A DNA stretch of 64,000 nucleotides from contig OZ281494.1 in NCBI GenBank assembly GCA_965637545.1, positions 17,298,001 to 17,362,000 on the forward strand, in the 5' to 3' direction. The stretch's first letter is position 1. Each line of letters begins with the position of its first letter. The stretch is from Phallusia mammillata (Eukaryota). The notes under the pieces are model-generated. The model was not told the DNA's origin, did no database searches, and saw only the letters and a list, made by a program, of their open reading frames with translations. The position numbers and the translations under genes were made by a program. This document shows, piece after piece, positions 551 to 64,000 of this stretch.

Positions 551-20682
<20,132 letters not shown>

Positions 20683-57100: not shown

Positions 57101-58342
57101 AACAAGATTACTTTCTGAACTTGGTGACAAAAAATGCCCTCGAAAAATCTAGTGTTTTATACCTGTAATCTAATTTGTTTGCTTTTCTCTAAGGCCTGAA
57201 CCTGTTGCAAATATTCTGGAGCTGTGCCAGAATTTACTTCATTGAGTTTTTTAGTAATCTGTGTGTGTCGTTCCCTGTAGAGCCTGTACAAATTTCAAAT
57301 ATTAGGACAGCACAATGCTGATAAAAAGGAGATCTTACTGGTCACGGATGTCCATGAACTGCTTTTCTATTGTAGTCATCTCTCCTATGCATTGTGATCT
57401 TCTTCTATTGCATTCCTCTTCATCAAGTTCAGAGCTTTCTGCTTCTGATTCATCTTCCTACATGACATGCATTCAAGCATTATAAAGGGCCATTGAAATA
57501 AAAATAAAAAAGAGGTCATAGTTATGTGAAAGTATTGACATAAAATGGACAACTTTCAAATTTTGTTTGCTACTGACAACATTTCATTGCACAAGTTTGC
57601 TTTGTAACACGTTAAGGTTTGTATATTTCTGTCTGATAAGTTTAATAAGCCACACTTTTCTATCATTATGGTATCCTAAAGTAAATGCTGTAGCAATTAT
57701 CCAAGAAATTTTTATCAAGCAATGATTGGATACAGTTTTCAATTGCAGATGCAATAAATTTTTACAACCAAATTCTGTCACGAAAAAACACACTTTTTAA
57801 TTAGTTTTAAGATACTATTATTTCTTCTGTGCAATTGGTTGGCCATGTAGAAGCTTTGTACACAAACCTTTACATATTCACAAAAACATGTCATGTTGTT
57901 GACAACAGCAAAGCATTGTGTACACCAAACTTGCAGTTAAAAATGTATCTGATGGATTCATGGCCACAATAATTTTTAGCAAAGCTATTAAATTTTGGCA
58001 TATGTTAGTTTGTTTACATCAACTTACATCTTCATCAGAAGATGACGAAGAAGATGAAGAGATTGGTGGAGAAGAATGCTCATGGCAACCTTGGTCTGTC
58101 TGCTCATCAGCCAGCATGTTTTCTGTATGAGACTTAATCACATTGTGTGTGCTAGAAGTCATCTCAAAAGACTTCGATGCTGTCCCAAAATCAGAAACTG
58201 AGGCGGAAAATGTTGTAAGAATTTGTGACACTTCTTCTGTGGCTGATTTCTCCTTGCTAGCCTCTGTTTCGGACTGGTAAGATGAACTTTTATTCTTAAG
58301 TTCATCTTTATTTAATGCTTTATTGGAGTTTTCTGCATCCAT
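54132..58342 (-). CDS. BRMS1L: BRMS1/BRMS1-like Sds3-family subunit of the Sin3-HDAC complex, 398 aa
   Basis: Exons 58342-58028, 57457-57339, 57283-57163, 57036-56950, 55424-55205, 54911-54807, 54537-54426, 54249-54132. Motifs ESSELDEEECNRRRSQCIGEM, QLYRER, TAPEY, RLEEDR, KKPVTVTGPYIVYML.D.DIVDDWTAI; C-terminal QLQRGKYSLQH resembles BRMS1L. One intron is AT-AC. Confidence 0.92.
54912..55204 (-). other. U12-type (minor spliceosome) AT-AC intron of BRMS1L
   Basis: 5' splice site ATATCCTTT, branch site TTCCTTGAC (plus 54925-54933), 3' end ttAC; splicing restores VTVT-G-PYIVYML in frame. Confidence 0.92.
56318..56361. repeat. 20-bp direct duplication
   Basis: catgtcataggtgtgaaacc at 56318-56337 and 56342-56361. 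Confidence 0.8.
56388..56922 (+). mobile_element. Helitron/Helentron-associated non-autonomous element (HINE-like) with internal ~150-bp tandem repeat, in a BRMS1L intron
   Basis: Two full tandem units plus a partial third start at 56534, 56679 and 56837. The 3' end reads aaaaacaatatgt + GC-rich hairpin gtccccttc-atg-gaaggggac (56896-56916) + ccataaat. The left boundary is approximate. Confidence 0.5.
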
Positions 58343-58606
58343 TTCTTTAGTTAAGTAAATACGTTTACAAATACCACAAAAACCTGTAACTCAAAAAGGG
58401 TAATTTGTCACTTTACATGGTTGTAACATCAACAATATGTTGCAACTGTCAGTTCAGTATTTACTTCAAAAATTATAGTTTAAGTAAATCTTCTCCCTGT
58501 GCTCAAATTGAATTGATGCATTTGGGCAACAGTAAAGTAAACAGATATAATATTTTATGTTAAAAAAACTTTTTCACATAAAAAACTGCAACCAGTTAAG
58601 CAAGAC

Positions 58607-58969
58607 TAGGGTTCCTCTATTTCTCGACTTTTTCGTTTCTTGAGAAACGAGAAATTAAAAATCCATTTCTCGAGAATGTGGAGAGTCTCGAAATTTTTAT
58701 TTAAGCCGATTTTCTAACAAAAACAAACAAAAAAATTTCCGATTGTACGTTTTTTCGCTTCTAGTAGTGATCGCAAGTAGTGATTCGCTAGCAAACCAGC
58801 AAAAACCGAAGCGACTGTTATAGATCTTACGCAAGTAACGCAACCAGGCGTGACTACTGCCTGGGAAAGGTGAAAGTTTAGCGGCAACGCACGCTAAAAA
58901 ATTTTTCTCGAGAAATTTTTATTTATTTCTCGAGAATCGAGACTCGATATTTCTCGAGAAGGAACTCTA
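58607..58969. mobile_element. hAT MITE with TAGGG termini and TTCTCGAGAA palindromic repeats
   Basis: TIRs tagggttcct / aggaactcta; perfect TSD agcaagac (58599-58606, 58970-58977). Confidence 0.88.
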
Positions 58970-59507
58970 AGCAAGACCAAATCAGAAACATATGTATGTA
59001 AACATATAACTGCAGTTTATAACATGTGCTGTCTGTGCAGTGTGCAGACATTCCACACTTGACACAAGACACAAGCATGCCATTGGATTCAAATATAGTA
59101 ATATAACACAGTTGGTTCTTAAACTTTGCTTACATGTATTTCTGTTTTTAGGGTGCATTTTTTACATGTTTTTATGTTATGTTGATGGCACACATAAAAT
59201 ACCCAATTTAAGCTTTTTTTAAGCATTTTTAGTTTTCATGGTATCGCCAGTTATCATTGTAACAAAAATTCCTATAGTCAGGCTCTCCATTCAGTTACTT
59301 TGAAGATATTTATTCAAAAAACCCTCTAGAATATTTTCTTTGACAATTTTAGTTGCATATTATTTGACTTTTGTCATCATATTACATTGACACGTGTTTC
59401 AAACATGACAAAATGTGTAGTTTAATGAACAGAGTTTATGTAATAAAGTTAATCTAAATTGTAACTGTGTCTGCTCTGCTGACCTACATCTCTCTTTCTA
59501 TTCTGAA

Positions 59508-60037
59508 TAGGGTTCCTTCCCGGGAATGTCTCGACGGGAAATTCCCGGGATTTCCCGGCAAAATTACGTTCCCGAATCCCGGGAAATTTGTTTTCAATTC
59601 CCGGGAAACAGACAAACAAGCAAAAACGTGTTAATTTTGTAAAAAAATAACGGAAATGTTTAAATTTCTGCTAGCTGTTACGAAAATACGGCGTGTTGTA
59701 ATTTTAATGATAAAGTAAGTAAGCGTTTTTATACGAGGTGGCGAATTATTTTCGCGAAAATGCGCCACCCAGCGGTACTAGAAAAAGCAAATTTATTTTT
59801 CGTAATTTCTGAATCTTGTTTACCTTCAAACAAGATTGCAAATATAGTTTCATCGACAAAATCATGGCTAATTAGATGCCTCCAGCGAAAATAAACTAAT
59901 TTTGCGATTGCAATGACTTAATTACCCACAAAAAATCGGCACATTTTTCAGTCGGGAATTCCCGGGAATCCCGGGAAATGAAAAAAATATTTCCCGATTC
60001 CCGGGAATTAAAAAATCCGGGAAATAGAGGAACCCTA
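59508..60037. mobile_element. hAT MITE with TAGGG termini and TTCCCGGGAA palindromic repeats
   Basis: TIRs tagggttcct / aggaacccta; perfect TSD attctgaa (59500-59507, 60038-60045). Confidence 0.9.
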
Positions 60038-60357
60038 ATTCTGAATCTGAGCAATTTCTTCGCTGTTAGGATTTACAAATTCGACACGGTTGGGTGCATC
60101 AGCGGCAAAAATACAAATGACGCATTTCATAGAAATTAAAAATCGAATATAAAGTGATCGACACCGACACGAAAACACTGGATCAGCACGCAACAGTTTG
60201 ATGAAAGTGTTTAAAAACTAACGTTGTACTTTAAAGCATTTTTTTAAGGAAATACTTGCGCATATAGTTTCGATGCAATGTTTTCGTTCCCTGAGCAGGT
60301 CGTTTGGGCAAACTGTAACTGAAAATGCCAACAACTGCATTGGCGCTGGCACTTGTG

Positions 60358-60515
60358 TTAATCAGGAAGTTCAAGGCCCCTTTGGTTCCAAATCTGTTTT
60401 GATAACAGATCTTCGCTTTTGCTTTCTCTGCATTCATCTTCATCAAGAAGTTTTCCTTGCCCAAACGTGCCTACTCCATCGTAACGACCAACAGTTACAA
60501 TGAAATGCAAGTCAC
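60358..60515 (-). CDS. Candidate terminal coding exon of an unidentified gene whose upstream exons lie to the right
   Basis: Acceptor ttaacttgtggcag|, phase 1, reads (G)DLHFIVTVGRYDGVGTFGQGKLLDEDECRESKSEDLLSKQIWNQRGLELPD*. No family recognised. Confidence 0.3.
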
Positions 60516-60619
60516 CTGCCACAAGTTAAACGTCTGTCAGCGCTAAAAATTAAAAGCGAACCAACTTAAGATGTCGACAATACAACAAAAGCTAACACAA
60601 ATTTTGAGTTAGCCTGTAG

Positions 60620-60800
60620 CAGGGGTGCACAACCTGCGGCCGTGAACATGTAAATTAAAATAAAGGTGACGGCAGTGACGCAAATAAAACTCTTTGGTAA
60701 AAAAATTCTAAAACTCTCTTTAGATTTTTAAACCGCTCTGAATGAATTTTGTGGGGAACATTTCCAGTCTAAATATCCACATGTGTCAGACTTTTTGTAC
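60620..60800. mobile_element. Left end of a hAT MITE with no right end in the window
   Basis: caggggtgcacaacctgcggccg resembles the hAT ends at 53183; no complementary TIR downstream in the window. Confidence 0.55.
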
Positions 60801-60915
60801 ATCTATTATGGGGCGCCGTTTGTAAAAATATCAATGACATTTCTAAAAAGCCTTTTTTGCCCAAATAATGAAGCCCTTTGTAAAAATATGCATGTGTAAA
60901 GAACCACGTCATTTT

Positions 60916-61211
60916 GATTTAGCTATATCAGAATGGGAATGCCATTCCGATTTAGCTATATCAGAACGGGAATAACAGTTCCATTCCGATTTAGCTATAT
61001 CAGAACGGGAATGTCATTTTCATTTCGATTTAGTTAAATCAGAACGGGAATAACATTTCCGTTCCGTTTTAGCTATTTCAGAACGGGAATGCCATTCCGA
61101 TTTAGCTAAATCAGAAGAGGAATAAAATTTCCGTTCCGATTTAGCTAAATCAGAACGGGAATGCCATTCCGATTTAGCTAAATCAGAACGGGAATGCCAT
61201 TCCGATTTAGC
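60916..61211. repeat. Tandem array of eight 33/39-bp units, each made of two palindromes
   Basis: Units start at 60916, 60949, 60988, 61027, 61066, 61099, 61138, 61171, with a partial at 61204. Consensus gatttagctaaatc-agaacg-ggaatgccattcc. Confidence 0.93.
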
Positions 61212-61357
61212 ACTGAACCATGACGAACTGAGTGATGGACCGGACCATAATAACCAACGGGGTGTAAGGACTTAAATTACATGCAACGTTTCGGGGTTTG
61301 TCTAATTCGCAACCGGTCAGAAATCTGCTGTTAGTTGACAACTGTAACATATTATTT

Positions 61358-61401
61358 AATTGCAATCAATTAAATTGCAATCAATTAATTGTAATCAATT
61401 A
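61358..61401. repeat. Three tandem 14-15-bp near-palindromic AT-rich units
   Basis: aattgcaatcaatta / aattgcaatcaatt / aattgtaatcaatta. Confidence 0.8.
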
Positions 61402-61513
61402 AATACAGTTAAACATTAGCAATGCAATGAACGAACGGTGTGGATAATCTCGGTTCCAAAACCAGAAATATGGAACGTGGACGTCGTAGAGGCGGACCTG
61501 CATGTGTTTTATT

Positions 61514-62823
61514 ATGGTTAGTTTGGTAACATCCATGCAAGAGCATTTTTTTATTTTCTTTATTCTACTTCAAGGGAAGGCCAAAAAAGCAAGTTCCGAT
61601 GGACAGGTTGTTGGAACTTTTGCAACTTAAAGTCTCAATTACAAAAATTGCAAAAATCTTGGAAATTTCCCGACCAACCCTAAAAAGGGTTATGAGAGAA
61701 AACGATGTGGATATTAATCAGTACAGGTATATCATGAACTTTGTTTTGGTTCTAAATGAGTATACTGTATCTGATCAATGTGTATACACAGGTTCAAAAA
61801 GTACATTTTCTCAAGGTCGGGTATTTATTTTGCAGTTCGTTGACCAATAATGAGTTGGATGATGTAGTCCGCAACATAAAACAAAACCACCCAGCAGCTG
61901 GAGAGGCAATGATGAAGGGTCATCTTCAATCACAGGGTATACGTATCCAAAGAAAAAGATTGCGTCAGAGTCTTCACCGAGTTGATGGCGAGGGGATCCA
62001 TGCAAGACAGCTGACTACAATAAGCAGAAGGACCTACACTGTTCCGTGTCCTAATTATATTTGGCACATAGATGGAACACATAAGCTCATAAGATGGAAA
62101 TTTGTCATACATGCAGCTATGGATGGCTTTAGTCGTCTCATTACATTCTGCCACTGTTCAACCAATAACAGATCATCTGTAGTGTTAAAATTGTTTAAGG
62201 AAGCTGAAGCAAAATATGGTTTACCATTACATGTTCGATCCGACTATGGAGGAGAAAATGTGCAAGTGTGGAATTACATGCTAGAAAAGCATCAGAACTA
62301 TCATGCAGTTATTACTGGAAGCTCTGTCCATAACCAGCGCATTGAAAGGTTCAACCGTGATATAAACACACAAGTTGTAAATAAATTTTACAATGACTTT
62401 TTCTTTCTTGAAGAAAGTAATTTGCTTGACCCAACAAATGATACAGATTTGTTTTGTTTACATTTTGTGTTTTGCCACATCATTAATAAGCGAATCCAGG
62501 AGTTTGTTAATGCTTGGAACAAGCACAGTCTTTCCACTGAAAAAAATTGCACTCCTGAACAGTTGTTTCATCTTAACTTACATTTACTTCAACTGCAAAC
62601 TTTAAACGATACTGGTAAAATAGATAGTGAGGATATTGTATGCCCAGGTACAAGTTCTGTTGAAGTAGACGCTATTCCCCATTTACCACATGAATGTGTG
62701 AGTGAGCTACAGGACCTATTGCAGCAAAACTCTAATCTAGATGGAATTATTTTGTATAAAAATGCAGTCAATAAAACGTTGGAATATTTAATCCGGACAC
62801 AACACAATGCTTTGGTAGTGTAA
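61514..62823 (+). CDS. HTH plus retroviral-integrase-fold DDE transposase (IS3/IS481-related, IS3EU-like), intron-containing
   Basis: Exons 61575-61726 (GRPKKQVPMDRLLELL..ITKIAKILEISRPTLKR, HTH) and 61836-62823, joined by GT-AG intron 61727-61835. The likely start is ATG|gttagt at 61514-61516 (in-frame ATG also at 61502; uncertain). Catalytic motifs WHIDGTHKL, DGFSR, VRSDYGGEN and SVHNQRIER are intact with no internal stops. Confidence 0.85.
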
Positions 62824-63032
62824 ATTTGATGCATGAACTAATGTAACAGTTTTTTGATTTGCATGTTTTGAAAACAACACAAAAATGTGCCAGCAAGATG
62901 TCATTTATTTCGGGTTTAAATCCAGGTAGTGACCAGAAAAGCACTGGCTAAAAAAGATCAAAAACAAAAGAACACCCAACTAGCCATTTCAAAGGATCCA
63001 AAATATCAGGGTAGATTTGTGTTATATTTCAG

Positions 63033-64000
63033 TTAAGCAACACCAAATCCGGGGGAATTCAGGATTGCAAAATCCATTGCTTCTTTGAAGTTTTCATACT
63101 TGCTGTATCTTGTGGGTACAGTCAATATGTTCGCACAAGTGTTTGCCAAAGGGTACATAGACTCGTTCGAGAACTCAATGGATGGAGTTGGAGAAAAACC
63201 AAGAGGAGGCACTTGATCTGCCCCAGTTGCAAATATTAAAATTTCTTTTATTGAACATAAAGATTCCCCATCTGAAATGAAAGTCAAAACACAAGTCATG
63301 TGTTGTATGCTAATGTGCTGAATGTGAATACCTTCAACATCCAGTATGTAATCCCTCCAGAAGGAAACCGCCCGATTTTCCTGGCATCTTTCGTTGCTTC
63401 CAGGTTCTGATAGATTTAAATTGATGAAAATTGAGTCAACAATTTCTATGCCACTCAATGGTTTATTGTTTTGCCACAGAAAAATATCCTCAAATCCATT
63501 TGGTGCCAATTTTGCCTTATGTAGCAAATTATGTGTCATTAGACCAAGTCTAAACCTTGAAATAAACAAAAACCTCTTACTGTCTCAGTAATATAAATCA
63601 TTGCTTTTAAGCCATACCTGGCCAATAACTCGGTAAGGCGATCCTCTGTATAAAATTTAATTGCTTTTTCAACAATGTCATTTTTGCATGACAGGTCCTT
63701 CACAAATGTAATGGAACCACAAATAGACAAGAAATCATCCATATCTGACAATGCCACATTTAATTCCTCTACTGTATCAGTATTTTTGATCTGTTGACAA
63801 GTTGAATTTATCTTACAAAGTTGACAGTTTAACATACAAATACTATACAATTGAATTAGCGCTTACTTTTGTTAACTTGGAAAACAAGACAGGGTCATTT
63901 ATAGTTGCAAGAGCGTCCAAAAAATTTCTTGATCTATCAAGAACTTGATCATACAATAACTGGGAAAAAAAGCGTGGAGCAGGCCCACCATGAATGATTG
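63033..64000 (-). CDS. HECT-domain E3 ubiquitin ligase (G2E3-like HECT), 3' exons only
   Basis: Exons >64000-63867, 63790-63618, 63555-63332, 63271-63033, GT-AG and phase-consistent. Motifs IIHGGPAPRFFS, RFRLGL, FWRDYI, ILIFATGADQVPPLGFSPTPSIEF, catalytic PLANTCANIL, terminal GFGVA*. AATAAA on the minus strand at ~62904-62909. Confidence 0.88.

Follow-up and report, generated by a model that had tools for sequence, protein, structure and literature searches.

A G2E3-like HECT ubiquitin ligase gene as a putative conserved second gene of IS3EU/GingerRoot-type DNA transposons in a sea squirt and other animals

Published IS3EU/GingerRoot elements are DNA transposons whose transposase combines an N-terminal helix-turn-helix (HTH) with an rve-type DDE core that has no HHCC zinc finger, and they possess TA..TA termini and create 6-bp target-site duplications (TSDs) (PMC6839031, PMC10045372). 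The termini of IS3EU have been given as TAYGG..CCRTA (Kojima 2025, PMC12730594), and TSDs of 6 bp were reported throughout (PMC12730594; Kojima 2023, PMC10045372; 2019, PMC6839031). These elements are present in fish, corals, and other aquatic animals, and their descriptions give a transposase only (plus captured gene fragments in Selaginella), with no HECT or other ubiquitin gene. Here, we compare with them a locus of the sea squirt Phallusia mammillata, located in a stretch of 64,000 nucleotides (hereafter the window; assembly GCA_965637545.1, contig OZ281494.1, positions 17,298,001 to 17,362,000 of the forward strand). Positions 60807-64000 of the window very probably represent the left part (3.2 kb) of a cut-and-paste DNA transposon of the IS3EU/GingerRoot type, in which a transposase gene is followed by a convergent, G2E3-like HECT ubiquitin ligase gene as a conserved second gene. 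The full Phallusia element is probably ~6 kb long, and its right terminus, past position 64000, would read ...TTTACAAACGGCGCCCCATA.

Enzymes of the ubiquitin and SUMO systems are carried by several other transposons, including ULP1 proteases in MULE, CACTA/EnSpm, and Zisupton elements and OTU proteases in some Helitrons. In these cases, the element likewise keeps a conserved second gene of a ubiquitin-like system, but the products are deconjugating proteases, whereas a HECT E3 is a conjugating enzyme. Integrase-type DDE proteins form very stable strand-transfer complexes that need to be removed before the host can repair the gaps; for example, ClpX disassembles the phage Mu transpososome, and the turnover of retroviral integrase is linked to the proteasome. 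Mu and retroviral integrase provide a functional analogy only, by which the transposase might be the target of the HECT protein. Within the superfamily, the nearest precedent for accessory enzymes is found in rust-fungus and truffle IS3EU elements, which also carry extra enzyme genes (a TET/JBP dioxygenase and an alpha-kinase), one of them opposite to the transposase, and whose accessory enzymes are presumed to counter control by the host to the element's benefit (PMC12730594). However, these are a dioxygenase and a kinase rather than an E3, their hosts are fungi rather than animals, and the TET genes hop between superfamilies. In the open literature that we searched (Repbase Reports and subscription journals lay outside the search), no paper joins IS3EU with HECT or GingerRoot with ubiquitin, and the GingerRoot, IS481EU, and TET/JBP papers make no mention of a HECT gene.

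Comparison of sequences across genomes indicates that HECT belongs to the transposons themselves, as the conserved second gene of an animal IS3EU/GingerRoot lineage with a wide distribution, and is not a host neighbor. The genomic surroundings of transposase homologues were searched for HECT by tblastn, and five insertions, from medaka and the assemblies ERZ26868619 and ERZ26692634, contained the pair tail to tail (plus-strand transposase, minus-strand HECT), bounded by inverted termini and flanked by perfect 6-bp TSDs. Three of these complete elements are from ERZ26868619 (L012, 8992-13836, TSD GTTCAA; L013, 8755-14041, TSD ACACTT; L014, 8992-15009, TSD TACCAG), one is from ERZ26692634 (L023, 8952-16520, TSD AGAGGC), and one is from medaka (L008, 9107-21635, TSD AGGGGT). 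The similarity between element copies ends at the termini, with unrelated flanks beyond them, and identical elements occupy different sites, each with its own duplication. Their HECT genes are a single 429-aa open reading frame (ORF) in L023 and an annotated gene encoding 527 aa in L008. In L022, a member of the L023 family, the pair also lies between matching termini, with an irregular duplication of 8 bp at best. The pair is convergent as well in L001-L004 and L009 (two families from assembly ERZ25067590, ends not captured) and in the contigs L015-L018. Starting instead from the HECT side, a firefly protein (P0141, named “G2/M phase-specific E3 ubiquitin-protein ligase-like”) was found to have a convergent rva_4 gene 143 bp away; this pair is flanked by 41-bp palindrome arrays and followed by a second such pair, which the right end of the first element abuts, leaving the duplication unreadable there. 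A coral copy (L007), with the duplication GAAATG and perfect inverted repeats of 1,022 bp that start TATGGGGCGCCGTTTGTAAA, has its HECT gene reduced to the last 40 aa beside the right inverted repeat and is a deletion derivative.

With the Phallusia window counted, the convergent pair occurs in at least eight families and seven genomes, and the transposases seen alongside HECT were of the rva_4 type only. One acorn-worm HECT has no transposase within 10 kb. Perfect 6-bp duplications were present in six relatives (L007 and the five pair-bearing insertions), none was present in L006, and the Phallusia copy shows the left flank ATCTAT only. A first-pass annotation of the Phallusia locus had proposed that the two genes form one mobile unit, and the five independent insertions of the pair within inverted termini and TSDs support this proposal. 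The opposite picture, in which HECT is a single-copy, syntenic gene with the full G2E3 architecture and the transposases elsewhere lack it, was not what the relatives examined presented.

In the Phallusia copy, we directly observed a terminus, a subterminal array, two spliced transcripts, and intact catalytic residues. The left terminus TATGGGGCGCCGTTTGTAAA (60807-60826, plus strand) is identical over its 20 bp to both termini of coral L007, differs by 3-5 mismatches from the termini of L001, L004, L008, L009, L012-L015, L022, and L023, and was found once in the window versus 0 times expected by chance. Its TATGG at 60807 agrees with the IS3EU form, both ends of which were seen in L007, L008, L012-L014, L022, and L023. 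The six bases before it (ATCTAT, 60801-60806) are the putative left copy of the TSD, by reference to the perfect 6-bp duplications of the relatives, while the region between terminus and array (60807-60915) is by its position the outer part of the left inverted repeat. The array that follows (60916-61211, plus strand; TRF and pattern search) consists of ~8 units alternating between 33 and 39 bp, with the palindrome GATTTAGCTAAATC in each, and its repeat pattern gave 9 matches where 0 were expected. Palindrome arrays were found at both ends in L007, L008, L010, L013, and L023 and at the left end in L009, and the palindrome core ATTTAGCTAAAT is common to the L009 array (5781-6259) and the Phallusia unit, the two transposases being ~56% identical, which fits a conserved HTH recognition site. 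The array units are probably transposase-binding sites. Elsewhere in the window, we found no inverted copy of the terminus, no more array units, and no further transposase or HECT copies, and Rfam revealed no known RNA family within 58000-64000.

Contigs from four public runs of four studies were placed on 60800-64000; the runs are taken as RNA because their contigs carry spliced joints. No contig covered the terminal region (60807-60915) or the repeat array, and those of the transposase begin at 61240, right past the array. The transposase gene, on the plus strand, comprises a 5′ leader exon with an upstream ATG at 61470 (61240-61516; contig start at 61240 and a GT..AG joint 61516/61575), a second exon with the start codon at 61599 that encodes the HTH (61575-61726; RNA joints and Pfam HTH_7), and a third exon with the rva_4/rve DDE core, the stop codon at 62821-62823, and a 3′ untranslated region to ~62834-62896 (61836-62896; Pfam, the D/D/E columns, and RNA contigs). 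Its two introns (61517-61574, 58 nt; 61727-61835, 109 nt) have clean GT..AG joints in the RNA. The underlying ORFs span 61599-61850 and 61756-62823 (355 aa); the short one matches the resolvase-type HTH_7 (3.7e-07) and the 355-aa one matches rva_4 (6.8e-72) and rve (4.8e-09), with no zinc-finger match in Pfam. Joining 61599-61726 to 61836-62823 gives a protein of 371 aa, 100% identical to a Phallusia mammillata UniRef protein (P0001). Across 24 aligned homologues, the residues D122 and D179 (P0001 numbering) do not vary and E213 hardly does; the three are set 57 and 34 residues apart, indicating that the DDE triad is intact. Hence, the protein is an rve-type (DD35E-like) DDE transposase with an N-terminal HTH and without the HHCC zinc finger, as in IS3EU/GingerRoot, and its homologues include Oryzias, corals, and other fish, which are taxa named for the superfamily in PMC6839031.

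Two further features of the transposase 5′ exon were observed. After splicing from 61516 to 61575, the frame opened by the upstream ATG (61470) crosses the main start at 61599 out of frame, which makes it a possible translational brake on the transposase. A 14-15-bp tandem repeat is located at 61354-61404, where an RNA contig of run X11 differs by several indels and substitutions, suggesting either an allelic variant or that another copy is expressed.

The HECT gene, on the minus strand, enters the window with an exon cut by the window end (63867-64000, with coding sequence from 63998(+) to 63867; RNA), the rest of the N-lobe and the N-terminus lying beyond 64000. It continues through exons 63618-63790 (RNA joints 63555/63618 and 63790/63867) and 63332-63555 (RNA joints and contigs, gap-free profile alignment) to the last exon (62888-63271; Pfam, RNA, and alignment), which holds the coding sequence 63271-63036, the stop codon 63035-63033, the catalytic Cys codon 63137-63135, and a 3′ untranslated region to ~62888 with AATAAA at 62909-62904. 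The three introns in between (63272-63331, 60 nt; 63556-63617, 62 nt; 63791-63866, 76 nt) have clean GT..AG RNA joints. The last HECT ORF matches Pfam HECT at 3.8e-12, and the visible 255 aa align gap-free and end to end with positions 225-477 of a family profile of 477 positions (301 bits), so that about the first half of the HECT protein falls beyond the window. The catalytic Cys within ANTC lies 33 residues from the C-terminus and in alignment falls on the catalytic Cys (TC) of HERC6 and AREL1, and the protein terminates in GFGVA.

The 60-nt intron at 63272-63331 is in frame and has no stop, and the RNA contigs include both spliced and unspliced forms of it, so that the gene may give two HECT isoforms, with and without 20 residues of the hinge that precedes the C-lobe. 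At the 3′ ends of the two genes, HECT contigs end at 62888-62889, downstream of the minus-strand AATAAA, and transposase contigs reach 62877-62896, such that the convergent transcripts abut or overlap by a few bases at 62877-62896. The gap from stop to stop is only 143-370 bp in compact relatives. Overlapping transcripts could give rise to double-stranded RNA.

Most of what the first-pass annotation had read from the letters of this locus was borne out. It had started the element at 60807, which is the exact terminus, and had described a spliced HTH-DDE transposase with its stop at 62823, short introns in both genes, and a distance of 209 bp between the convergent stop codons; Pfam, the identity with P0001, and spliced RNA contigs over all five introns agree with it. 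It was also right about the retention of the Cys in ANTC and the terminal GFG. Its description of the HECT gene as intact holds for the last 255 residues up to the stop at 63033, whereas the remainder is cut off by the window end, and of the repeat arrays that it placed behind both genes, the one ahead of the transposase is real (60916-61211), while the one behind HECT falls outside the window.

Across the transposon copies, the HECT proteins are strongly diverged, with last-exon identities of only 28-52% and modest Pfam HECT scores (3.8e-12 to 1e-15), and none of them has lost the catalytic Cys motif P-x-A-N/S/H-T-C or the C-terminal tail. In L023, the 429-aa ORF matches nearly the whole of Pfam HECT (positions 11-305 of 306), and its predicted model (pLDDT 86, pTM 0.83) has a complete N-lobe and C-lobe after ~40-50 disordered residues; in Foldseek, the model matched the full HECT domains of Smurf1/2, WWP2, HUWE1, and others with probability 1.00. 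A bilobal C-terminal fold with the Cys ~35 residues from the C-terminus, as expected of HECT proteins, was thus found by Pfam and profile for the window and by the model for L023. Judging from this model, the HECT protein of compact elements consists of little besides the HECT domain itself and lacks a substrate-binding module, and the N-terminal regions of HECT relatives are variable.

Among named proteins, the closest are those called “G2/M phase-specific E3 ubiquitin-protein ligase(-like)”, which come from scallops, a clam, the firefly, an acorn worm, and numerous fishes and frequently exist in several copies. The resemblance to the G2E3 HECT that had been noticed at the start is reflected in these names, and the proteins themselves lack PHD fingers: PHD/RING-like zinc fingers (zf-HC5HC2H) were found in none of 10 long relatives scanned nor in the 429-aa ORF of L023, and are present in Latimeria G2E3 (P0168). 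One 90% cluster of relatives is spread over many reedfish chromosomes, and the relatives are not single-copy host loci. Compared with G2E3 and the divergent “GL-Metazoa” family that was defined next to it (Grau-Bove et al. 2013, PMC3673628), the transposon HECT is equally divergent and keeps the Cys, and its nearest named proteins are G2E3(-like); however, true G2E3 has PHD-like zinc fingers, while the relatives are multi-copy and, where tested, inside transposons. The G2E3, GL-Metazoa, and GL-Bikonta HECT families were described as extremely divergent in PMC3673628, whose text contains no occurrence of “transpos” and does not link GL-Metazoa to transposons. GL-Metazoa probably corresponds to the transposon-borne G2E3-like HECT genes. 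In an unrooted HECT tree, with no outgroup and an unresolved backbone, true G2E3 grouped with one fish G2E3-like clade (99/99). Separately, two gene models (P0214 from Epinephelus and P0234) fuse CARD and caspase domains, or UBX, to a G2E3-like HECT domain, which reflects either genuine exaptation or annotation that ran across a transposon insertion and joined separate genes.

Several other explanations of the Phallusia locus need to be weighed. That a host G2E3-like gene simply came to lie beside an unrelated transposon insertion would be compatible with a window in which the left end of the element alone is visible, but it is hardly credible given the recurrence of the same convergent pair in so many families and genomes, five times within TSD-flanked termini, and the search for a right terminus between 62823 and 63033, which found none. 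It is somewhat less improbable, though still quite unlikely, that the locus is a former transposon, now immobile, of which both genes have become host genes (e.g., for control of the embryonic genome or the cell cycle). Such a domestication could account for two genes that are intact where visible, spliced, and represented in RNA contigs of several studies, and for the UniRef entry of the transposase; further, the grouping of G2E3 with one fish G2E3-like clade means that traffic between hosts and elements has happened. Domesticated copies, however, usually lose both their termini and their arrays, whereas the left terminus here matches the family consensus perfectly, the array is intact, and the catalytic DDE residues are retained.

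An unlikely reading, but one to which we give more room than to domestication, accepts the mobile element and treats its HECT protein as a pseudo-enzyme, i.e., a scaffold, a localization factor, or a module that binds ubiquitin or an E2 without transferring ubiquitin. The modest Pfam scores and the description of the G2E3 HECT as non-functional among extremely divergent families (PMC3673628) would suit a pseudo-enzyme. Against this stand the P-x-A-N-T-C context and the GFG tail, which are kept in all transposon copies examined, from coral to fish and firefly, at 28-52% identity, and the predicted fold with both lobes complete.

If the protein is an active ligase of the element, the transposase would bind the palindrome arrays at both ends through its HTH, and its DDE core would excise the element and reinsert it with a 6-bp stagger, giving the duplication. 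The HECT protein would accept ubiquitin from a host E2 on its conserved Cys and act for the element. It may be recruited by the transposase complex and ubiquitinate the transposase or adjacent chromatin or repair factors, and this ubiquitination would promote both the turnover of that complex and repair at the 6-bp gaps. We prefer this recruitment, with the transposase, nearby chromatin, or repair factors as substrates, while giving it somewhat less than an even chance; the preference comes from the bare HECT domain of compact relatives and the linkage of HECT to very divergent transposases (~30% identity). About as likely, and ranked next, is that the HECT protein destroys host silencing or restriction factors, which the variable N-terminal regions of the HECT relatives would fit. 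In its broadest form, the proposal is that G2E3-like (GL-Metazoa) HECT genes are largely second genes of IS3EU elements and the first known E3 kept by a eukaryotic DNA transposon, that they act on the element's own transposase complex or chromatin to complete transposition, and that vertebrate G2E3 shares a direct origin with them by capture in either direction; taken as a whole, this is tentative, and we would expect it to fail in some part sooner than to hold in all.

Some observations weigh against an element-borne, active ligase gene of this kind. The right end of the Phallusia copy and the N-terminal part of its HECT lie beyond 64000, with the left end only in view, and the multi-copy evidence comes from relatives, not from Phallusia. 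HECT is absent from the crinoid elements L005 and L006, is almost entirely gone from the coral copy, and goes unreported in the paper on plant GingerRoot; such loss or absence in some lineages implies that the gene is dispensable in cis. The divergence of the transposases and that of their HECT partners were not significantly correlated (Mantel r = 0.36, p = 0.18, 7 pairs), and the firefly transposase is far more divergent (~30%) than the firefly HECT (~43%). Mammalian G2E3 HECT was reported to be non-functional (Brooks 2008, as cited in PMC3673628), so that the ligase activity of this divergent class is putative, as are the proposed targets of the ligase.

The element copies of other genomes showed additional structural features. 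Long inverted repeats of 0.8-1.8 kb were present in L007 (9292-10313 and 13500-14521), L008 (9107-10932 and 19618-21635), and L022 and L023 (~775 bp on either side). They extend into the 5′ part of the transposase gene, so that its promoter and leader sequence is repeated, pointing inward, at the HECT end of the element, and transposase and HECT may be transcribed from identical terminal promoters. In the firefly (L010), two different HECT and rva_4 elements (8116-14600 and 14621-17650) are arranged head to tail, with array units of 41 bp versus 20 bp, which suggests that they inserted next to or into each other's ends. Other transposons are nested in element copies of ERZ25067590 (L001, 9680-14440; L004, 11730-13786), and one of them, with 300-bp inverted ends, is in two copies, so segmental duplication may account in part for the spread of these large copies. 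A HECT gene beside crinoid L005 was considered as an alternative gene order and rejected, as it is outside the element as delimited against L006. Within the window itself, a stretch of ~545 bp that resembles a miniature inverted-repeat transposable element is located at 59500-60045, with inverted ends TTCTGAATAGGGTTCC ... GGAACCCTAATTCTGAAT and many TTCCCGGGAA palindromes; it has no relation to the HECT element.

A conserved conjugating E3 ligase would represent a new kind of transposon accessory gene. The catalytic Cys is kept intact from the coral remnant to fish, firefly, and sea squirt, such that the element seems to need host ubiquitination, and possible purposes include clearing the transposase complex, steering repair, and disabling host control. 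The relationship of vertebrate G2E3 to the transposon HECT genes also becomes of interest, and the multi-copy gene models that animal genome annotations call “G2/M phase-specific E3 ubiquitin-protein ligase-like” may belong to transposons, which would affect counts of gene-family “expansions”.

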